DNA from: Trichoplax adhaerens
Taxonomy: Eukaryota > Animalia > Placozoa
Length of the DNA stretch: 64,000 nt
Assembly: GCF_000150275.1 (NCBI RefSeq)
Contig: NW_002060943.1
Span: forward strand, 3,864,008 to 3,928,007
Direction of reading: 5' to 3'
Shown here one piece after another: positions 1,430 to 35,887 of this stretch. Every line of letters begins with the position of its first letter. Position 1 is the first letter of the stretch. The notes beneath the pieces are model-generated. The model saw nothing but the letters and a program-made list of their open reading frames with translations. It did not search any database and was not told the DNA's origin. A program made the position numbers and the translations under genes.

Positions 1430-1620
1430 TCAAGCAACCTATCCAGAATTTAGAGGATATGGTTGAGGATGTTATACTTCAGAGGATTCCATTTAGTCTT
1501 GCTAATCATAGCACTAATTTACCGTCAAGCAATCCATACAGAAATTAGAGAATATAGCTTAAGATGTCGTATTTTACAGTATTCTATTTAGCCTAGCAAA
1601 TCACAGTGCTGATCTACTAT
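1430..1620. repeat. Diverged ~95-bp tandem duplication
   Basis: tcaagcaa...agaa.ttagag.atat...gatgt...attc.atttag.ct.gc.aatca.ag starts at both 1430 and 1525. Confidence 0.7.
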
Positions 1621-2405
1621 TGCTATTCGACTAATTTAGGATGATATAAAGATAAAATATGTAGTAACCAATAGTCTCACCAACAATAATATTATTATAG
1701 CTATAGCACCTGATTTCTTAATGCTGTTCAATTGCTCGGCGTAGGTGTACGCATTGAAAATATTTTTCGTTACACTCTTCTTTTACCCCTTAAATATTGC
1801 ATGAAGGAGCGTCTAGTAAAGTTAGTATAATAATTTTCTGTTGTATGGTATTAAGAATAGCATACATACTCGTGTTAGTGTGAACTAAAGGTATTCCTTT
1901 CCTATTTTAACACTCCATCCACTTATAATTTCGTAAAGACTCCATTACTGAAAGTTAATGCTGACCAGTTCTACTAATTAAATTCCTTTGATCTCAGCTA
2001 TTTTGAAGGTAAATTAGTGCCATAGCAACGTAAATTAGACTTAGATATAGATTAAGTACAATAGTCTCATTTTTCCATTGGTTAATGCAAATTGAATAGG
2101 CATGAACAAATTCTATTTTGTTATCTTTTCTACGGACAAAAGATATCAAGATGACGCATTGCAATTGTAGCAAATGCTAGCACTATTTTAAAGTAGAAGG
2201 TTAATTTAAGTAGCATTAATAGCAACGCTTTTCGTCTTTTACCTCCCTCATCGTCTCTATAATCGTTAAGAAATAATCTCCCTCCATTATAGCTTTTTAA
2301 ACTCAAGACGAATAGTGTGTCGGCTAAATTCCCGTTATATTTATCATCTAAGGGCATTGAAAACTTGATAATGTAAAGTTAACAAGGAAATCAAGCTCAA
2401 CAGCC

Positions 2406-3434
2406 ATGGCCAATGAAAGCAACACAACATTATTACATATCCCAAGTACTTACCAAATTCTATCCGTTGCATTTATATCATTGATCATTACTATCGGAAG
2501 TATCGGCAATCTTGTTAACATTTATTTTATTTATAAAACACCATCGCTGCATAGCTTTAATAACATCCTTATAGCTCATTTAGCCATAAGTGATTTCTTG
2601 CAGGCAATATTAACACTACCTATGGCTATCTTGAACTCTTATTTACGCTTCAACAGCCCAATCATATTATGCCGGGCATTTGCGTTTACTCTTAACTTTT
2701 TGGTCATGGTTTCATTAGCAGCAACATCAGCAATTAGTATCGATCGTTATTTTGCTGTCATTTATCCTTATTCTTATTCGGCTAAAATGAAAATTAAGTA
2801 TATCAACATATTTATCGTATCGACCTGGTTGTCAGCAGCAATCACATCTGGAACTCCTTTACTTGGGTTACAACGCTACGGTCTAGGAGAATATTCATTT
2901 ATCGCTGATGGCTTACAATGCTGGTTTGATTTTCAGCATCATCAAAAAAATAGAATTGCCTTCATAGCTACCTTTGTTTACATCGTAGCAGCTATTTTAG
3001 TGACGATGACTTCCTATCTCGCTATATTTTACGTTGCCTGTCATAAAGGCATCACAGATGTATCTGTCGTAGGTTATGCATCGCTCAAGCGTTCTATTCG
3101 TACCACAGCATTGATAGTAGGCAGTAATTTAGCATGTTTTATACCTGTACTAGTTGGTGCTTCCATAAGTTATTTCACAAAGCGTGATTTACCTCCAGGA
3201 TTGACTGTCGCAGTCTATCTTCTAACATTCTTTAATCCCGCCATTAATCCTGTTATTTATGCCTATACCAACGAAATACTCCGTAGGAAAATAAAACAAT
3301 ATTGTTACTGTCCCTGCAATCCACGCTTTAGGCAAATAAAAGTTCGTAGTAACACTACAATGAGTTCATTATCGTGTCCCAATCAGTTAAGTCAAGAAAG
3401 TAATTTTATATTAAATCAATCGATAACTGTGTAA
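2406..3434 (+). CDS. Intronless rhodopsin-like (class A) orphan GPCR, paralogue 1, 342 aa
   Basis: Seven hydrophobic segments. TM1 GN, TM2 LAISD, TM3 C...AISIDRY, ECL2 QCWFDF, TM6 CFIP, TM7 NPVIY. N-terminal N-glycosylation sequons (NES, NTT). Confidence 0.95.
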   Translation: MANESNTTLLHIPSTYQILSVAFISLIITIGSIGNLVNIYFIYKTPSLHSFNNILIAHLAISDFLQAILTLPMAILNSYLRFNSPIILCRAFAFTLNFLVMVSLAATSAISIDRYFAVIYPYSYSAKMKIKYINIFIVSTWLSAAITSGTPLLGLQRYGLGEYSFIADGLQCWFDFQHHQKNRIAFIATFVYIVAAILVTMTSYLAIFYVACHKGITDVSVVGYASLKRSIRTTALIVGSNLACFIPVLVGASISYFTKRDLPPGLTVAVYLLTFFNPAINPVIYAYTNEILRRKIKQYCYCPCNPRFRQIKVRSNTTMSSLSCPNQLSQESNFILNQSITV

Positions 3435-22000: not shown

Positions 22001-23054
22001 TATCAATTAGCATTATATTCTGTAACGCTTCCAAATTTTAGCTGCGTTTATTACCATGATTTAGAGTTTAAAACTAATTTAAATCCATCTCATTATAGCA
22101 ATTTAATTTATAAGTTAATAAATAAGTAATTTTTTTAACTGGGTTAGCCAACTACCGGTAATTGTTCCTGTCATAATTAATGTTAAAAATTGATATACTA
22201 TTATTACTTCATAGAATTATAACTTCATAATGCAGGATATATAGCTTTCATTATAATTATCTAGATGATACAATCATTGATTGAGAGAATAATATTCATC
22301 ATAATAAAAATTGATCAAATCAATTATGATCATTTTAAAGTTTACTTTAATAAAGTAATGAGGATAGATAACAGCTATCCTTGTTAATCAATATCGATTA
22401 TATAGTTTATCTAAATTTAGTTCTAAATCACTATTATAATTACTGCTTTGAAGTATGACAGTAATTAAGACGTTGCAAGTTCATTGTTTTACTGTACTCG
22501 TATAAAATTAAATTATGAGCTAAACTCAAACTAATATAACATAACAAAATGTATCCTCATATATAATTGATCATAATCAGATTTCATTAAATAAGTGAAA
22601 AATACAATAAGCGACTGTAATCACGATAATTATGCTGACGTGAAGAGTAGTCAATTATTCTCTACAGTGATTTTAATTTCCACATATATCTGTCTCCATT
22701 CATTGGGATATTCATTAAGCGACCTTCTATTAAAAAAATATACCTAATGAATGATAACGTTGAACAAATAGGAAAAAACAACTGTCCCGTGACAAAAGAT
22801 ATTATCACCACTTTCCTCTTATTTTCAAATTGATACTACCACAAGCCTTTGGGAACAGTTACAGTGATATATTCTCAGAAGAAAGTATTAAGTACGTGCA
22901 GTAAAGAGCCACAGACTACTGTGATCAATTTATTTCATCTTATGTCATTCTTTTAACATGAGCCCAAATAGACTACTTGGATACAAATTATGTACTAAGA
23001 TATAAAAATTCAATTTATCAATGTTGCTTTTATTGATCGAGCAACCACAACGTG

Positions 23055-24068
23055 ATGATAAATTTAACAAATAGTTCATTTCCTTACATGCCAATCTTAT
23101 CCTACAAAGACATTTTCGTTGTTACAATATTGGGAATAATTGCTTCGGTCGCTTCGTTTGGTAATCTTTTCAATCTCTATCTCATCTATCACTCAAGATC
23201 ATCACAATTGGTTGGTACTTTACTTCTTGCAAATTTAGGTTTAGCCGATTTATTTTCTGGACTTGTTGTTATGCCGTTAGCTATTTATAGTTTCATCGTA
23301 CAAGATACTATATCTCCGTTTCTGTGCCAACTGTGGGCAGTATTAGCTAGCCTAAGTATTGGTGTATCCTTTTATACTACTGCAGCCATTAGTATCGACC
23401 GCTGTATCGCCGTTGCTAGTCCATTTTATTACTCTCAATCTGTTAATTTACGTGTATTAAAAGTCCAGATTGTAATATTATGGCTAATAACTAGTGTAAT
23501 CGCCATTATGCCAATGCTAGGCTTGAAAGCCTATGGTATTGGACATTACAGTTATATTACAGGATCGCAACAATGTTGGGTTGATTTTACGGACAGAGAT
23601 CACAATTATTATATTGGATTGGTTTTGTTGTCGATACTATCGTGCACGATAGTGATCATTGTACTGTGTTATAGTATTATATTTATCATTGCTTGGAGAA
23701 AAGGTTTACAAAATCTATCAGGCCATGGTACTATCAAAAAATCGATCCGAACAACTGGTTTAATTGTTGGCACCAGTCTAATGTGTTGGATTCCTCTTAT
23801 AACTATATCTTACGTCGAATTTATAGACTTCATGTTACTGATATCAGATGACATAGTATTAGCAGCCTATCTTCTTACATTTTGTAGCTCCGCTATTAAT
23901 CCTGTCGTTTACTCATTGACAAATAGCGAACTTAAGCGTCGTGTCCGACTAACGTTGCGAAGGACAAACGTAATTGCATTTTCACAATCAAAGCGTAAAG
24001 GCAAAGTTAACCCGATCGGAATCGATTCTGTTATTGGTAATCTCCATAGCTCTGTAATAGTCGGCTAA
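23055..24068 (+). CDS. Intronless class A orphan GPCR, paralogue 3, ~337 aa (ATG at 23055 rather than the GTG at 23052)
   Basis: TM1 FGN, TM2 LANLGLAD, TM3 LCQ...AISIDRC, ECL2 QCWVDF, KKSIRTT...CWIP, TM7 INPVVY. Confidence 0.95.
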   Translation: MINLTNSSFPYMPILSYKDIFVVTILGIIASVASFGNLFNLYLIYHSRSSQLVGTLLLANLGLADLFSGLVVMPLAIYSFIVQDTISPFLCQLWAVLASLSIGVSFYTTAAISIDRCIAVASPFYYSQSVNLRVLKVQIVILWLITSVIAIMPMLGLKAYGIGHYSYITGSQQCWVDFTDRDHNYYIGLVLLSILSCTIVIIVLCYSIIFIIAWRKGLQNLSGHGTIKKSIRTTGLIVGTSLMCWIPLITISYVEFIDFMLLISDDIVLAAYLLTFCSSAINPVVYSLTNSELKRRVRLTLRRTNVIAFSQSKRKGKVNPIGIDSVIGNLHSSVIVG

Positions 24069-25945: not shown

Positions 25946-26739
25946 ATAGATCTCATATTTTTATATTATTATCTCGATGGTATCGACAAAGTCGCTTGAA
26001 ATTGCAGCTAAATCAAAGTAGGGCAAGGTAAAGTTTTTTCCGCCATCCTACAAATCCACCATTTAGACACCAGCCAAAGTACGGTTGTCTTGGATACGGT
26101 ACGGTATGGCACGGTCCTTCTACGATTGATTGACTGTCGCTGTTGGCAACTGCAGGTATTGATACAGTATAGGAATTGTGGCTGCATTTTGCGGCATCTC
26201 GCACCTTAACTTAATTCGGCTTGCTCGACTAGCTGCAACCACATGCCATTGCCCATCTTGCCTTGGCGCTGTAGGAAAGTGGGAAAGAGTGCAATTTTCC
26301 ATGCATTTGCTTGCGGTTTTATCCTATAGAATTAATAGACAAGCTATACGTTGACCAGTTTGCTACTTTGCGGACTAATAGTACATGAAGTAATCGTTTG
26401 CCGTCAACCAAGCTTCAATTGGACTTCATACGAGCGCAGTAAACTCCACGTTGCAGCAGCTTGCCATTTCGACGATTTCAGCTATTCTTGCAAAGCGAAT
26501 CGTTCGGTATGCATTGAACAACTGAACATAGTAAATGAAATAAATTGTGATAGGTATTACTTTAGACCTAGTAGTCCTTAGTCCTATCTTGAAAGAGCTA
26601 AAAATAAGATTATTGGTCTGGATTAAATGGTCATTCGTGCTGTTGAACTTCCAACAGTACTGTGTTGAATCCATTTTTTTCATCATTTTTTCTCCTAGCT
26701 GTAACGCAACTCATCTTTCAAGAATTGAATACGAGCAGG

Positions 26740-29700
26740 ATGAAATTATCACCGCGAAAATATCAACTAGATCTTGCTGTGATCGCGCAAGAAAGAAATA
26801 CAATAGTCTATTTAGAAACGGGTAGTGGGAAAACCTTGATTGCTGTCCTTGTCATTCGACAATTGTACAGGGAGCTATCCAAGAGCCTACAAGCAGGAGG
26901 CAAGAGAGCTATTTTCCTAGTTAACACAGGTGCGATGCCCTTTACCTGACATAGATATTGATATGCAAGTAGGATAATCGTATCCACAGTGGTTAATTTG
27001 TATTATTATTTAATGCTACTCTATCCTGGTGATATGCAAGTAGGATCCACAGTGGTTAATTTGTAACTTAAAAGATGTTGTGTATTTATCATTATCTTAA
27101 TAATATCTATCCGTTACTATGCAGTCCCTCTTGTTCACCAGCAAGCCAAATTTATTGCCGATCAAACTAGTTTCTGCGTTGGTAAACTATTTGGTAAATG
27201 TAATAGTGATAAACGTCGTTCCAATTGGAAAGATTTTTTCGATAAAAACAACGTTATAGTTGGCACACCGCAAACGTTATTAAGACTTTTAGAATTGAAT
27301 ATTGTCAACATGCAGATGATCAATTTGATAGTATTTGATGAATGCCATCATGCCACCAAACATCATCCGTATAGCCGTATCATGGATGCCGTAAAAGCAC
27401 TCGAAGAACAGGGCAGACCTAAAATTCTTGGTTTGACTGCATGTATATTTAAAGGAGAATGTAAACCGAGCAAAGTGCCCCAAAGGTTAGCAGAACTAGA
27501 GGAAAAATTATCAAGTACTATCGCTATTCCGGGTTACTTAACTTACATCGATAAAAACAAGACACCTCCAACAGAATATGTAATCGATTACGAAACCACA
27601 GAAACCTCTATTTTTGAACAAGTAGAAGCGCTGTCAGATTGTTCTTTCCTCTTGAAAGGATTCGATGCAATGTATTCCAATTCTTTTGAGAGTAAAGCGC
27701 AACGTGAACAGCAATCTACTTCATTGCAACTTGTGTTGACAGCATTTGACGAAGCTATTCTCACAGTCAACACTTTTGGTTTACGTATATTTCCTTTGGT
27801 CGCCGAAAGTATCGTGAAATGTATCAGAAAGGAATTAAGGATGTTTAGGGGAAAGGATGGAATCGATTACAAACTTTCCGCTAGTAATTCTTGGTTTCGG
27901 CCTGTTATACGAATATTAGAAGCCAAACTTAGCACTAAGATTGATGAATCCCACCCTTGTTATACGTGTTCTCATTTTGCCAAGTTATTGGATGTATTGA
28001 CCACCTTCAAAGAGCAAGATACTGGTATCATCTTTGTCGATAGAAGAGTTACCGCCTTCGTTTTACATGAATTACTCGTGCGAATTTCACATACGGATCC
28101 CAATTTAGCCCATTTAAATGTTGGTTGTGTCATTGGCCGTAGTAGTATCAAGAGCCAACTTTTAGGACAAGCGCAAATGAGTCGATATGAGCAAGAAGAA
28201 GTGATGAACCGATTCCGAAGGCATAAATATAATTTATTAGTTGCTACAAATGTGCTGGAAGAAGGTGTCGATGTATCTGAGTGCAATGTAGTTATAAGAT
28301 TTGATCGCGTCAATCATTTTAGTTCATATTTACAGTCTAGAGGGAGAGCGCGTGCTGACGACTCTTCCTATGTACTGATGATCAATCGAGAAAACCTTGA
28401 TGCATTCATGGAAGAATATAACTCGTGGCATTCGGTAGAAAAATTCCTACGTAGCTCACCAGAATTGCTGAATACTATCGTTTCTGGCATAAGCAAGTCC
28501 CTTTTCTCAAATGATAATAGTACGACTGATGCAAGCACAATCAGCAGCAAATTTGTCGTTGAAACTACCGGTGCCGAAGTTAACCTGTTTTCAGCTATCA
28601 GTGTATTGCTCAGGTTGGTGTACAGTCTAGTGTGTTTCAAAACTTGCTGTAATTTTCATTTGATCGGTAAAATACGGTTAAGTGAAATAATATCAATTAC
28701 TCAAAAAAAGGTACAGTCAAAGCATGATCAATGGTAAATCTCCTGAATTTGAGTACGAGACGAATGATGATCGGACTCGAGCTAAAATAAAGTTGATATT
28801 TTCTAATCCGCCCGAAAAAACTACCATAGAGGTTTGAATTAATTAACAAGTAATACTAGCATTAATTTGGATTATAGTTGTTACGTTACAAAGTCACATG
28901 CAAGCTCATACAAAATCTATATATACTCTTCTTATGCTGATATAAATAAAATTGAACCCCTGTAATAAGGGTCCAATGATGCAAAGTAAAAAAATTGCAA
29001 AAAAAGCCTCCGCCTTAGAAGCATGTAAATTCCTTCATGAAGTTGGTGAAATTACCGATAACTTGGAACCGAATGTGGGAAAGTATCATCAGTCTATTGA
29101 TAAAAGCCAGTATAAGCAATTTCCGATTAAGGTATTTTATTAACTAACTTAAACTATAATATGTATTACGTGCAATGTATAATTTATTTGCTGCAAATAT
29201 TGCGCAAAATCTTAACAAAATGTAATGATATGATCTAATATTCAAAATTAACATTATCAACATATGCTAAATGCTAGTTCCCCGACAATTTATCGATGCC
29301 AATCGAGGATGGTGATAACTTCTATCTTCACATGATTAAGATTGAGCTAAAGAACAGCACAATAGAGTCTATTGATACTGTCAGTTGTAGTTCGGACTTC
29401 GGATTAATATGCAAGACTAAGTTACACGAGGTATGGTCCTAAATTGTACTTGGATTTGTAAACTTTACATTCCGTTATTCCACGTTATTTTCAGAAGATA
29501 ATTGGTGCTAATGGCTAGAAAATTTAATATATATCTTTGCGTTGATAGATTGAGCCAACTTATTTACAAACATCGTGTGGCGACATATTATTTTCGTTAC
29601 AATCACTGGCTGTCCCGATGCACTATTCATGCGATGAATTAAGCCTTATTTCGAAATTTGTAGAGTATTTATTTACCAATATCACACCCTGTAGTACAAT

Positions 29701-31862
29701 AACGGACTTAATCTACGATCCTACAAACAGTTATGCAAAATACATGATTGTTCCTCTAAATTACGCCAAGAGCAGCAGGTTGCTACATTCCCTTTCAGCT
29801 AACTAGAATTATTCTTTGCTTGGATTCAATATACTTTAATTGCATAGAATTAGCCGTATAGGGAATACAAGTTTGAATGTAATACTTTGACATTTTTCAT
29901 TAATTTAAATTATTGACTACTTTTAGGTCTATGTATTCTATAAATTTTGAATTAATGGCAACGCTATTGAAGCCACGGAAATACTGGCCCTTTGCTAGTA
30001 ATCTCGGTGATGGTTGCAAGAACGTTAATGACCTCTTAATAGTCAAAAATTACGGCCACTGGGTTACGAACCAAGTCGACGTATACGCTCTGCGAAACAT
30101 CTGCTACGACCTCTCACCGCTTTCTCGTTTTCCGACGGATAAGCGACTTACTTATAAAGCATATTACCATCGCAAATATCACACCAGAATTGAGAACTCA
30201 AATCAACCTTTATTCGCTGTTAAGACATTGCATCGATTCCCTGTAGCTTTAGTGCATGAAAATTGCATATCCCCTTGTAATAATACTACTGAAAGTAAGA
30301 AAAGTAATAGTGGTTTCGTACACTTAGTGCCTGAGTTATGCCTTGTTCATCCATTTTCCGCATCAATGTGGATGCTCTCACAGTTTTTACCTCTGACCTT
30401 ATACAAAATAGAGAAGAATTGTCTTGCTTATGAGATGATCGATTATATTCAGTGCGCATCCATTCTGAAGAAAGTAACGGAACCTCGAAGGAAAAAACTA
30501 TTGCTACGTGAAACAACCAACCTCGTGGATCGTATCACTCAGTCATTAACCCTCCCTATTGCAGAAGAGCAATGTAATTTTAATAAGATTAAATATATAG
30601 GAAAAGTTTTTATCAAATTGGTTCTCGCTGTTAATTTATACCAAACCTGCCCTGATGATAATTCCTATGCTCTAACCATGAAACGACGACAGCAAAGTAG
30701 CGAATTTTATCTGTTTAATCTAGCTGCTAAGACAAATATTCCATCCTATATTATCAGCAAGCCTTTCAATCAGTTAAAGTGTTGGATTCCCCCTGGTTTT
30801 ACTTTTAGCATCCGTTGCAAGGATGATAGCTCTAGCGATTCAGCCTTGGCTGAAAGGACGATTATAGAATCGATAACAGACAATTTTTTATCTGTTAAGT
30901 CAATAGCGGAATGCATATCTGCAATTGTTGGAGCACTGTTATTTCCTGATAACGAAACTGAAGGCTTAAACTTTCTAAAATGGCTTGGATTTGCCATTGA
31001 GCCATTTTCCTCAATCAGCAACGGTTTTGACGTCTGGAATGAAAAGATTACTCACATGATTGAAGAATCTAATTCCCAGTCGTGGTTAGAGAAACTACAC
31101 AAATTTGAGGAAAATCTTGGATACAAATTCATTAATATTGATTACTTAATTTTAGCCTTTACACATTCATCAAGCGAATTTGGAGATTCTTTTAATTACG
31201 AAAAATTAGAGTTCGTTGGTGATTCGATTTTGAATTATCTCGTTATTAAATACTTGTTTTTGGCAACAGATCAAGACATAACTAGATCTAAATTTTTTTA
31301 TGGTATTGCTATATCAAATGAGGTCTATGGTTTATTATCTTATGCATATAACTTTCACCATCTATTTTATCAGTCCCCTTTCGTAAAGGAGATGATCCTT
31401 GGTTTTGAGAAGAAAACGGCCGATTTACTTGAGGTAGCGTACTGGATTCTATAGTCTTGATCTATTAGGATTAAGAAGCTATTGTGAATAAATTCTGATC
31501 GTAGTATTTATCATCTTAGGGAGGTTCTATACCAAGAAATGGCAATAAGCACGATTGGGTGTACACTATTTTTTCGAAATCAATCGACGACGATTTCAGT
31601 ATTCCAAAGGAACTTGCTGACGTTTTTGAATCTTTAGCTGCAGCTATTTATTTTGATAGTGGTCAAAATCTTTCGACCGTATGGAATATTTATTCAAATT
31701 TATTAAAACCTTTTCTAGGTAATGTAGTCATAACGCAAACATAGAGAATGTTGCTGCGTAACGTTAAATTGCTATTAACACTGAATACGTTTCTTATCGA
31801 ATATAGACAAGCTGCTGAAAGATAATCAAAAAAATTTCCAAGAACTCAACGGTGAAGATTGA
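26740..31862 (+). CDS. Dicer: Dicer-family protein, 9 exons, ~1368 aa: DExH helicase, DUF283, platform/PAZ, catalytically degenerate RNase IIIa, intact RNase IIIb, no C-terminal dsRBD
   Basis: Exons 26740-26929, 27125-28613, 28711-28831, 28970-29131, 29278-29430, 29549-29778, 29927-31433, 31520-31718, 31807-31862; all GT-AG, phases consistent, 4107 nt total. Motifs PRKYQ, ETGSGKT, DECHH, LGLTA, IIFVDRR, ATNVLEEGVDV, QSRGRAR; DUF283 SKKIAKKASALEACKFLHEVGEITDNLEP; PAZ LSPLSRFP...YYHRKY...QPL...LVPELC; RNase IIIb YEKLEFVGDSIL and PKELADVFESLAAAIYFD. Confidence 0.95.
26959..27065. repeat. Short direct duplication within Dicer intron 1
   Basis: tgatatgcaagtaggataatcgtatccacagtggttaatttgta versus tgatatgcaagtaggatccacagtggttaatttgta; identical apart from an 8-nt indel. 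Confidence 0.85.
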
Positions 31863-32156
31863 ATTTGATTAAAATAGTCCTTTATGCCATGACTGATACT
31901 TTAATAATGAGTGGCTCAGTATTCATTTCGGTTAGCAGCAAGAGTATTTTACAATTTTAGGATAGCTTTAAATAAAGGCGTATATCGTGTGTATGTACTT
32001 TATCAGTAAAATAACTGAAAATTATGAACATCGAAAAGTTAATTATCTGTTTAGTTTATCTTGTTGTTCGGATATTAATGACTACAAATACATAATTACA
32101 TTTGAAGTTAACATGTTTGTTTGTTAGTTATATAAGTATGTTGCTATCATTGATCT

Positions 32157-33414
32157 TCATCCACTTGCTGTTACTGGAATTGTATGACAGTGGTGGTCTT
32201 CCATATGACGATGTCTATAGAAATAGAAGTAGTTAAAATAAAATAATGATTGGCACGTTTGCTTTATCAATTTTGTAACAGTTTAAAACAAAAGCAGACC
32301 TTGCACAGTAATCGTGATGGCATCTAAGGCACTTGAAAGGTATTAACTCGTGAGTTCTACACTGCTTCATTGAGCATTTATTGCTCTTGGATGACCCTTC
32401 GCTAGCTACATTGTCTTTGCATCCGCTCATAATATGTCTCTCCACCTATTTTCATAAAACCCAACGTAAGTTTAAAGGCTGAAGTATTAGTCATAGAAGG
32501 TCATGTACAGTAACCGTTGCATGTTATGTTAATGCAAACATCTTTGTGATATGCTAGGATGAATAAAACTTGGTAATTATAGTCGATGCTGCAATTGTAA
32601 GATTATGTGTAAGCTTAAAACTTTGTTATTTGTTCTGTACACCTACAATATTGCTTTGATTTGTTCAACGAACCTGGTCATTCAGATTGAGTTTTGGATC
32701 TCTTCGTATTAGTTTATCACAGAGGGGACATGTTGCTATTTTTACCTATTTTAAAAAAAAAAATAATAATTAGTACGTGCTCGTAAATAAGCTTACTATT
32801 ACGGTAATGCAAAAGACTACCAGAAGTTAACTTCTTTGCCACTGAACTAATAACGTGACTGTAATGTCAACGCATATGGAAGCTACTAAATTATTGCAAT
32901 TGTTTTGTTAAAGTTTGATAGGAAATTGGAGCTATGGTATGAATCTCATACATCTTTATCAGCAAAGGCTTTGCATTGATGCGCTACGTGACTTCGATGA
33001 TTCAAGCTGAAATTGGTAGTAAAAATGAACGATATGAGTAGGCAAGTTCGATAATGATCATTGGCAGTTTAATTGTAACCACTGGTAATAGACAATAAAC
33101 CATGCTATACGCATGCAGAATGCACGTATTGGTTATTCCATTTCGTACAAAGTTAACGTATAAACATGCATTCAAATTTTACCATCGTGAAATCATATTA
33201 CTGTATAATTATAGCATTATTTCATCGTTTTATCGTTGCTTCATTCATCATTAAATTATGGTGCGCTACACATACAATATGGGTATATGAAGTTGATACC
33301 TTACCAGAAAATTTTGTGGCAGTCGTTACAAGTAAAGGGTAAAAAATCCAACTGATTGCAATCTTTCACGGAACAATGTCGTCCAATCGACAATAAATCA
33401 TGCTCCATATTCAT
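32157..33414 (-). CDS. ZFAND2: AN1-type zinc finger protein, ZFAND2/AIRAP family, 5 exons, ~146 aa
   Basis: Exons 33414-33305, 33006-32952, 32745-32674, 32445-32300, 32214-32157. Translation: MNMEHDLLSIGRHCSVKDCNQLDFLPFTCNDCHKIFCLNHRSHVAHQC...CPLCDKLI...VERHIMSGC...NKCSMKQCRTHELIPFKCLRCHHDYCARHRHMEDHHC. Two AN1 fingers flank a CxxC...HxxxxC module. Confidence 0.9.
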
Positions 33415-34940: not shown

Positions 34941-35059
34941 TACCGTCCTCTGAGCATCTGCACTCTGCGACCTGTTCTCATACGCACTCTCGCAAGTCGT
35001 TACCAGTGGCTTGCAAACTTGCTCAAGGATTCAAATCGATTCGATGCTGATTGTTCAAT

Positions 35060-35887
35060 ATGTCAAATCGTGGTGAAGAAATGCCCAGCGAAGATGCCTC
35101 GGCTAAGGTCTCTGACGTAGAATACGACAAGAGGGGCTTACCAAGATTAACACCGCAAGAAGAAGCCGTACTGCGTGAATGTCGTAGCCATTCACTCTAT
35201 TACCGTGGTATTCCTCTAGGAATAATTTCTGTGGTAATTACCAGACGTGCAGCCGCGTCGTCGCCCCATATTCATCGTTGGAGAGCATTTTACTACGTTG
35301 GAATTTTTGGCTTAAGTCTGTTAACGGGAATAGCATCTTATAGACGTCAGTGTATGGCAAAAATATTACAATTGGAAAATTCTCCTTTAGCTGACCGATT
35401 AAAAGAACAATTGAAAGGTCACAGCCCATACCAGCGATTACATCAGTGGCAGCAACATCAACAAGATCAAAATAATCAAGCAACTTTGCAACAAGGGGGA
35501 CAGCCAGTTGGTAGCCTATCTCCTCGTTCAACGTCGTCCTTCGACAGCAACAGAGAGAATTATAAAGATCGTGAAGAGCTACCAGCCTTTCGGAATAAGC
35601 CCTATGATGACCTTAAACTAGGTACGAATACTACTTCTACTTCAGCGCAAGCCGCACCACTAGCAATCTGGGACGACGATGAAAAACCTGATCGACGCCA
35701 GCAGGTTTCTTATAGCGATTTGCGTCAGCAAAACCGAACTCGTTGGGCAGAAAATGATGATAGAAAACAGCGAGGTGTTCCTGAAAGTATGGATAAAAAT
35801 AGCGGTAGTTCTTCGATGCAAGGGAAACAGGATGGCTTTCGAAAGCCCGTAAGGACTAATAAGTATGGTGACCCAATCGATGAATAA
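35060..35887 (+). CDS. OCIAD1: OCIA domain-containing protein (OCIAD1/asrij-like), single coding exon, ~275 aa
   Basis: LTPQEEAVLRECRSHSLYYRGIPLG...GIASYRRQCMAKILQLENSPLADRLK (OCIA domain), SYSDLRQQNR and terminal NKYGD are family-typical. First ATG at 35060. Confidence 0.88.
   Translation: MSNRGEEMPSEDASAKVSDVEYDKRGLPRLTPQEEAVLRECRSHSLYYRGIPLGIISVVITRRAAASSPHIHRWRAFYYVGIFGLSLLTGIASYRRQCMAKILQLENSPLADRLKEQLKGHSPYQRLHQWQQHQQDQNNQATLQQGGQPVGSLSPRSTSSFDSNRENYKDREELPAFRNKPYDDLKLGTNTTSTSAQAAPLAIWDDDEKPDRRQQVSYSDLRQQNRTRWAENDDRKQRGVPESMDKNSGSSSMQGKQDGFRKPVRTNKYGDPIDE

Follow-up and report, generated by a model that had tools for sequence, protein, structure and literature searches.

We analyzed a stretch of 64,000 nucleotides of the placozoan Trichoplax adhaerens (hereafter the window; RefSeq assembly GCF_000150275.1, contig NW_002060943.1, positions 3,864,008 to 3,928,007 of the forward strand), and describe here a Dicer gene that lies on its plus strand; coordinates without further qualification count from the first letter of the window. 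The gene has nine coding exons that sum to 4107 nt (1368 codons plus the stop), preceded by a 5' non-coding exon. Its product has the two tandem RNase III domains expected of a Dicer, and the first of these (RNase IIIa) has lost its catalytic acids, while the second (RNase IIIb) retains them.

The catalytic codons were read by hand on the raw window sequence and on the translation of window positions 30402-31460. This translation contains CNFNKIKYIGKVFIKL and SVKSIAECISAIVG from RNase IIIa; in the translation of the large coding exon 7 the RNase IIIa stretches read EEQCNFNKIKYIGKVFIKLVLAVNLYQTCPD and SVKSIAECISAIVGALLF, followed further downstream by NYEKLEFVGDSILNYL and, past an 86-nt intron, by IPKELADVFESLAAAIYFDSG. 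The first RNase IIIa motif (30582-30617) is NKIKYIGKVFIK, against the canonical ERLExLGDSFLK, with Glu replaced by Asn at 30582 (AAT), Glu by Lys at 30591 (AAA) and Asp by Lys at 30603 (AAA). The second (30897-30923) is KSIAECISA, against the canonical KSIADCVEA, with Asp replaced by Glu at 30909 (GAA) and Glu by Ser at 30918 (TCT). In human DICER1 numbering, these substitutions correspond to E1313N, E1316K, D1320K, D1561E and E1564S. In RNase IIIb, the first motif (EKLEFVGDS, 31200-31226) retains Glu at 31209 (GAG) and Asp at 31221 (GAT), and the second motif, PKELADVFESLAAAIYFD in coding exon 8, has Lys at 31607 (AAG), Asp at 31619 (GAC) and Glu at 31628 (GAA). The series E, E, D, D, E has thus become N, K, K, E, S in RNase IIIa, and E, D, D, E are all present in RNase IIIb; compared with a Dicer that has two active sites, the protein lacks the acids of the first domain (K, K, E and S, with N at the upstream Glu) and has those of the second. 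All RNase IIIa and IIIb residues and positions listed in the first-pass annotation of this DNA proved correct when checked codon by codon on the raw sequence.

Similarity searches were run exon by exon, on single exons of the gene. Against solved Dicers, phmmer aligned "nfnkikyigkvfik" with "nlerletigdsflk" of fly Dcr-1 and "nlerlemlgdsflk" of mouse Dicer, and "ksiaecisaivga" with "ksiadcvealiga". This places the substitutions at the catalytic positions. We also built an alignment of 45 Dicers (A1), composed of exon 7 of this gene, the four other Trichoplax paralogues and 40 full-length representatives. In the five RNase IIIa columns, E, E, D, D, E occupy at least 90% of its rows, and this gene deviates at 5/5; in RNase IIIb the G-D pair is invariant and the E nearly so, and the gene keeps the E/G/D columns. 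The catalytic loss is complete within RNase IIIa and limited to that one domain. Since Asp to Lys and Glu to Ser require at least two nucleotide changes apiece, it does not reflect one recent accident.

The remainder of RNase IIIa had been said to align still; the Pfam Ribonuclease_3 model recognizes the stretch, and an AlphaFold2 model of the residues encoded by 30402-31433 (part of exon 7), built with a Dicer alignment as input, gives the RNase IIIa core helices values of 85-97 (mean pLDDT of the model, 74.7). The best Foldseek matches of this model were mouse, human and plant Dicers, over RNase IIIa-IIIb. With a Dicer alignment as input, the model mainly indicates that the sequence does not contradict the fold.

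Coding exon 1 (26740-26929) contains the ATG, encodes helicase motif I (GSGKT, 26821-26835), matches Pfam ResIII/DEAD, and is followed by a donor GT at 26930, located by eye. Coding exon 2 (27125-28613) encodes the rest of the DExD/H helicase, including DECH (27337-27348), Helicase_C and QSRGRAR. The DUF283/Dicer dimerisation domain starts in coding exon 3 (28711-28831) and continues in coding exon 4 (28970-29131), and the platform region lies in coding exons 5 (29278-29430, frame open) and 6 (29549-29778). Coding exon 7 (29927-31433) spans PAZ (~30051-30404) and RNase IIIa (~30534-30995). RNase IIIb is split, its first half lying in exon 7 and its second in coding exon 8 (31520-31718); coding exon 9 (31807-31862), read by hand, encodes an 18-residue tail and the TGA.

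Five introns (28614-28710, 28832-28969, 29132-29277, 29431-29548 and 29779-29926, given after a shift of +2) are spliced out, with GT..AG borders, in an RNA contig of 1237 letters from run X9, and these joints set the 3' end of coding exon 2, both borders of coding exons 3 to 6 and the 5' border of coding exon 7. The introns 26930-27124, 31434-31519 and 31719-31806 were placed by hand from canonical sites, frame continuity and tblastn matches of other Dicers (31589-31711). For the second of these, a putative GT..AG intron, the donor GT was identified by hand at 31434, and coding exon 8 beyond it has a tblastn match to residues 1311-1350 of Dicer P0045 with 60% identity. The frame is open for 1368 codons across the coding exons, in agreement with the uninterrupted reading frame of the first-pass annotation; its count of nine exons holds for the coding part, to which the RNA adds one non-coding 5' exon.

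This 5' exon (~26318-26506, the start being approximate) is spliced to 26699 across a GT..AG intron (26507-26698, donor GT at 26507 and acceptor AG at 26697-98). It is defined by an X9 RNA contig with 189 letters ahead of 26698, of which the 30 printed letters equal 26476-26505 exactly. Read by hand, the frame of this exon has a TAA at 26440, and the first ATG comes only at 26740. The published model of the gene (1418 aa) differs from ours by 50 additional N-terminal residues (MAIDDRLL...), encoded near 25.54-25.60 kb in an upstream exon that the RNA contig skips. Most likely translation begins at the ATG of 26740, or else alternative first exons may exist. An X9 contig also has a 21-letter loose end at 26737, just upstream of the start codon, that corresponds to the minus strand of 26326-26346 in the region of the 5' exon; this is probably a fold-back or chimeric contig artefact. 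Within intron 1, a direct repeat of ~40 nt (GATATGCAAGTAGGAT...CCACAGTGGTTAATTTGTA) occupies 26940-27065, its two copies being ~70 nt apart.

At the 3' end, another contig of the X9 RNA run (record 16) covers 31521-32214 unspliced. Its match begins exactly at the acceptor of exon 8, crosses both the last Dicer intron and the 3' end, and enters the convergent zf-AN1 gene, within which the contig has an intron of the minus strand (32215-32299, CT..AC). It begins with 52 foreign letters, of which the 30 printed ones found no match when searched in the window. This contig may represent an antisense overlap of the 3' ends, a chimera, or a divergent intron in the relative from which the run derives. 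Were the last intron retained, the protein would end at 31744. In both cases it lacks a double-stranded RNA binding domain (dsRBD): the spliced product ends 18 residues past RNase IIIb, and no further plus-strand exon was found between coding exon 9 and the zf-AN1 gene. A C-terminal dsRBD is present in many Dicers, although not in all.

The domain composition is otherwise that of a Dicer, in a protein only ~25-29% identical to other members of the family. Pfam matched ResIII/DEAD, Helicase_C (E=1.6e-16), Dicer_dimer (PF03368, E=6.9e-09, above the cut-off), the platform (18.6 bits, E=0.0018, below the curated cut-off), PAZ (PF02170, 47.3 bits, E=2.4e-12, above the cut-off) and RNase III twice (Ribonuclease_3 in two stretches, E=6.6e-13, and Ribonucleas_3_3). 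Helicase motifs I, II and VI (GSGKT, DECH and QSRGRAR) are intact. The helicase exon matched AncD1D2 (9mw6) with a phmmer E-value of 1.3e-68, with DECHHA, GLTA and QSRGRAR aligned. AncD1D2 is a resurrected ancestral animal Dicer helicase that hydrolyses ATP (PMC10159624), and given this match an active ATPase appears plausible in the Trichoplax protein.

In RNase III enzymes, the acidic cluster of each domain cuts one strand. With the acids of RNase IIIa lost, we would infer that the protein can cut no strand other than the one that RNase IIIb serves. We hold it about an even call that the protein works in this way, as a one-strand cutter. RNase IIIa would most likely be a pseudo-nuclease, which keeps its fold and its partner role in the RNase III pair, its metal-binding acids gone and two of them now lysines. 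The protein would bind double-stranded RNA (dsRNA) as other Dicers do, its helicase, DUF283, platform and PAZ being intact, and would cleave only the RNase IIIb strand (the 5' arm in human DICER1), leaving either a duplex with a nick or a small RNA that is single-stranded, and not a duplex small interfering RNA. The two lysines in the RNase IIIa valley could hold the phosphate of the other strand without metal and, with helicase and PAZ intact, the enzyme might either measure from the end or thread along dsRNA, nicking it repeatedly. The label of half-active Dicer given by the first-pass annotation is correct in that the gene is a real and uninterrupted Dicer, with all acids lost in a still recognizable RNase IIIa and a complete RNase IIIb; half-activity itself stays a prediction.

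Several known systems bear on this reading. The usual view is that a Dicer has two active centres and cuts both strands; engineered mutants and tumour alleles are where single-site behaviour is known. Acid-to-lysine mutants are also known from bacteria, one of them being E. coli RNase III E117K. When RNase IIIb of human DICER1 is mutated, 5'-arm cleavage is disrupted (PMC6695490), and structures of fly Dcr-1 include a state captured after one arm was nicked (bioRxiv 10.1101/2022.04.19.488762); the two cuts are therefore separable. Human DICER1 single-site mutants (engineered in RNase IIIa, tumour hotspots in RNase IIIb) resemble the Trichoplax protein in having one dead and one live site, with loss of cleavage of one arm only (PMC6695490); however, they are mutations of a canonical enzyme, with the tumour hotspots in RNase IIIb, whereas the Trichoplax loss is natural, fixed, located in RNase IIIa and extends to all five acids. 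Aquifex aeolicus RNase III E110K, like this gene, has a lysine in place of a metal-binding acid and was crystallized bound to dsRNA (1rc7), which it does not cut at that site. It thus provides a precedent for the suggestion of the first-pass annotation that acid-to-lysine changes could preserve RNA binding. The bacterial mutants are homodimers with both sites dead, in contrast to the single altered site of a pseudo-dimer here. Hydra DicerC and several flatworm Dicers (PMC3991619), and Naegleria, diatom and Albugo Dicers (PMC4791657), also depart from ExxGD/DxxE in one RNase III domain, with no functional characterisation in those two papers. Trichoplax differs from them in having RNase IIIa-dead and RNase IIIb-dead paralogues together in one genome.

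An alternative that we regard as unlikely, though the strongest of those considered, is that the protein does not cut at all, and is maintained as a dsRNA sensor or translocase for its helicase, PAZ and RNA groove, functioning, for example, in sensing, unwinding, loading or sequestering dsRNA, with an intact RNase IIIb site that is little used or merely not yet lost. The helicase is indeed the best-conserved part of the protein (the E=1.3e-68 match), the RNase III exon scoring far lower against other Dicers, and it also matches the RIG-I/MDA5 sensors; lysines in the RNase IIIa valley would favour binding without cutting, as in 1rc7. What this explanation accommodates poorly is the conservation of all four RNase IIIb catalytic residues and of their flanking motif despite ~25-29% identity, which is hard to explain without selection on catalysis.

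The assembly (105.6 Mb in 1414 contigs, ~30% G+C) contains five Dicer-like RNase III loci, all on the contig of the window, and we compiled their catalytic residues from the exon translations of the other four loci and from proteins P0001 and P0055. This gene (3.89 Mb) has a helicase, K, K, E, S in RNase IIIa and E, D, D, E in RNase IIIb. L005 (P0055, 6.32 Mb, with helicase) and L004 (7.05 Mb, no helicase) are canonical in both domains. L002 (6.97 Mb; C1414:6968805-6972674, minus strand, ORF 1444-3048), with helicase, has E, D, D, K in RNase IIIa, the lysine being at the fourth position (KSIADVMKA, extending to KSIADVMKAIL), and intact RNase IIIb motifs (QKLEFLGDT and SDVVEALIGA). L003 (P0001, 707 aa, 7.08 Mb; C1414:7078220-7082029) corresponds to DCL-E (ABZ10547), has no helicase, and is canonical in RNase IIIa (LERLEFLGDRYL and KAIADCVEG); in RNase IIIb Ala stands in place of both glutamates (A, D, D, A; EKLAFLGD within SYEKLAFLGD, and GDTFAAV, PKELGDTFAAVVAAV). 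Altered catalytic sites are therefore present in 3/5 Trichoplax Dicers, two in RNase IIIa and one in RNase IIIb, and the four other paralogues all retain E..D in the first RNase IIIa motif. L002 carries exactly the A. aeolicus type of Glu to Lys change at the equivalent RNase IIIa position and, by analogy, is a natural counterpart of the bacterial RNase III Glu to Lys mutants, which are binding-competent and cleavage-dead.

DCL-E, like the gene described here, is a half-dead paralogue of the same genome, and it is its mirror image, with an intact RNase IIIa and Ala for both glutamates of RNase IIIb. Its C-terminus is dsRBD-like and, unlike our gene, it has no Dicer-type helicase nearby: when the genome was searched with the helicase exon, Dicer-type helicases turned up only at this gene, L002 and L005. 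These complementary defects raise the possibility that dicing is shared between two enzymes, this protein cutting one strand and leaving the other to a second enzyme, with duplex small RNAs as the product all the same; the partner could be a second molecule of this protein acting from the opposite end of the dsRNA, or DCL-E. Both altered genes are listed in PMC4791657, and one has the helicase that the other lacks. We nevertheless consider such an arrangement improbable, given that Dicers act as intramolecular RNase III pairs and that 3.2 Mb separates the two genes, which share only 29% identity.

The RNA run X9 and the run X5 come from a relative lineage (organism B), ~99.5% identical to the window (~0.5% divergent), which allowed us to estimate selection on the gene. 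Differences between the window and organism B, whose coverage is incomplete, were classified by hand. Ten were synonymous (26853, 27459, 27831, 28518, 30090, 30095, 30446, 30635, 30953 and 31013) and nine non-synonymous (27868 Y>H, 28772 R>G, 29332 M>V, 29593 F>L, 29766 A>V, 30073 Q>L, 30396 T>A, 31062 E>Q and 31832 K>N); RNase IIIa itself has two synonymous changes and no non-synonymous ones. Taking ~77% of coding sites as non-synonymous, neutrality predicts ~3.3 non-synonymous differences per synonymous one, or ~14.6 : 4.4 among the 19, compared with the 9 : 10 observed, that is, a dN/dS of ~0.27 (binomial p ~0.005 for at most nine non-synonymous among 19, calculated by hand).

In principle, the gene may be a paralogue in decay that will end as a pseudogene, with the loss of the RNase IIIa site as the earliest sign. 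Five paralogues imply redundancy, the second RNase IIIa motif scores low (5 bits against mouse Dicer), and a dN/dS of ~0.27 is not especially low. However, the frame is open for 1368 codons in nine exons, all introns are GT..AG, the RNA contig of X9 is spliced and there is an excess of synonymous changes. The RNase IIIa substitutions require several nucleotide steps, and therefore the loss is old, yet nothing else is broken. The gene is intact, spliced and under purifying selection; with spliced RNA and a 9 : 10 ratio, a decaying copy is unlikely, and we would put its chances very low. An unexpressed and neutrally decaying copy, one of the circumstances that the first-pass annotation had named as fatal to its reading, does not fit these observations.

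Another was an assembly error. Contigs of two DNA runs from 2022 (X1 and X2, same organism label) have zero differences from the window over 26500-32400, which includes the whole gene; these runs may derive from the same clonal strain, and so they rule out an assembly error, but not an allele private to the strain. The two runs of the relative lineage, X5 and X9, extend over both RNase IIIa motifs, and the X5 contigs (30231-30613 and 30773-31032) have changes at 30396, 30446, 30953 and 31013 and the catalytic codons unchanged; one further X5 change is unlisted, its position apparently near the contig end. Two further DNA runs being identical over the whole gene, and a related lineage sharing codons at five separate places, an assembly or sequencing error at the catalytic codons is so improbable that we do not consider it further.

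Several points weigh against the protein being a one-strand cutter. The selection estimate consists of only 19 differences between very close lineages and is not resolved by domain. The RNA evidence comes from one metatranscriptomic run (X9) of a relative lineage and not of the strain of the window, and the introns flanking exon 8 are not among the joints of the RNA contigs. Searches with HMMER across all libraries and with a word index retrieved no more distant placozoan orthologue: the HMMER search with the 513-aa exon gave no match above 35% identity, the best being DCL-E with 29% and the gene's own cluster being absent, and the word-index search, among proteins of 282-898 aa, matched only two isopod Dicers. 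One-strand nicking, the strand that is cut and the role in a pathway are all read purely from the sequence, and activity of RNase IIIb may depend on features of RNase IIIa such as ball-and-socket contacts.

Judged by its sequence, the gene is the catalogued T. adhaerens Dicer TadhB/TriaDCR1b. The published TriaDCR1b (supplement of PMC4791657) agrees letter for letter with the N-terminal exons (...VTQLIFQELNTSRMKLSPRKYQLDLAV...ETGSGKTLIAV...), and the assignment to TadhB (TRIADDRAFT_51673, XP_002107798, 1418 aa; PMC3991619) is by length, 1368 residues plus the 50-aa N-terminal extension. Bollmann et al. 2016 (PMC4791657) reported that RNase IIIa of T. adhaerens DCL1b, the gene described here, varies in both motifs, that of DCL1a in the second motif, and RNase IIIb of DCL2b in both motifs. 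The catalytic residues of all five Trichoplax copies are tabulated in PMC3991619, which comments only on the flatworm and Hydra losses. Nothing on these residues is found in Calcino et al. 2018 or in the paper on tardigrade Dicer. The five placozoan Dicers are an older discovery, reportedly first described by de Jong et al. 2009; in the literature that we searched, which did not include that paper, no study interprets or tests these Trichoplax substitutions. The novelty claimed in the first-pass annotation was thus overstated: the gene was catalogued and the variation of both RNase IIIa motifs was in print. The sequence fact is not new; what is new here is the family picture, with three altered-site paralogues out of five.

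The genes around this Dicer belong to other families. Upstream is an intronless rhodopsin-family G protein-coupled receptor gene on the plus strand (23052-24068; 7tm_1, E=1.7e-33). Downstream are the convergent zf-AN1 zinc-finger gene (32236-32445, minus strand, a sub-threshold Pfam match) and a gene for an OCIA-domain protein on the plus strand (35051-35887, E=6.6e-11).

A half-active Dicer is a reasonable reading of this gene, which gains in interest as part of a trio of altered-site paralogues. If a single-site Dicer has been naturally fixed and selected, one-strand cutting can be a normal function, a case strengthened by the mirror-image paralogue in an animal that, to our knowledge, has neither microRNAs nor Piwi-interacting RNAs. 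The protein would then offer a natural enzyme for dissecting the contribution of each RNase III centre. More speculatively, and with little expectation that it will prove right, we suggest a division of labour among single-site Dicers in the small-RNA biogenesis or dsRNA defence of Trichoplax, each cutting a defined strand: helicase-bearing enzymes dead in RNase IIIa (this gene, possibly joined by DCR1a, which has the Glu to Lys change) and the helicase-less, RNase IIIb-dead DCL-E. Such a system would generate asymmetric or nicked products, a mode that, as far as we know, has not been described for any animal.

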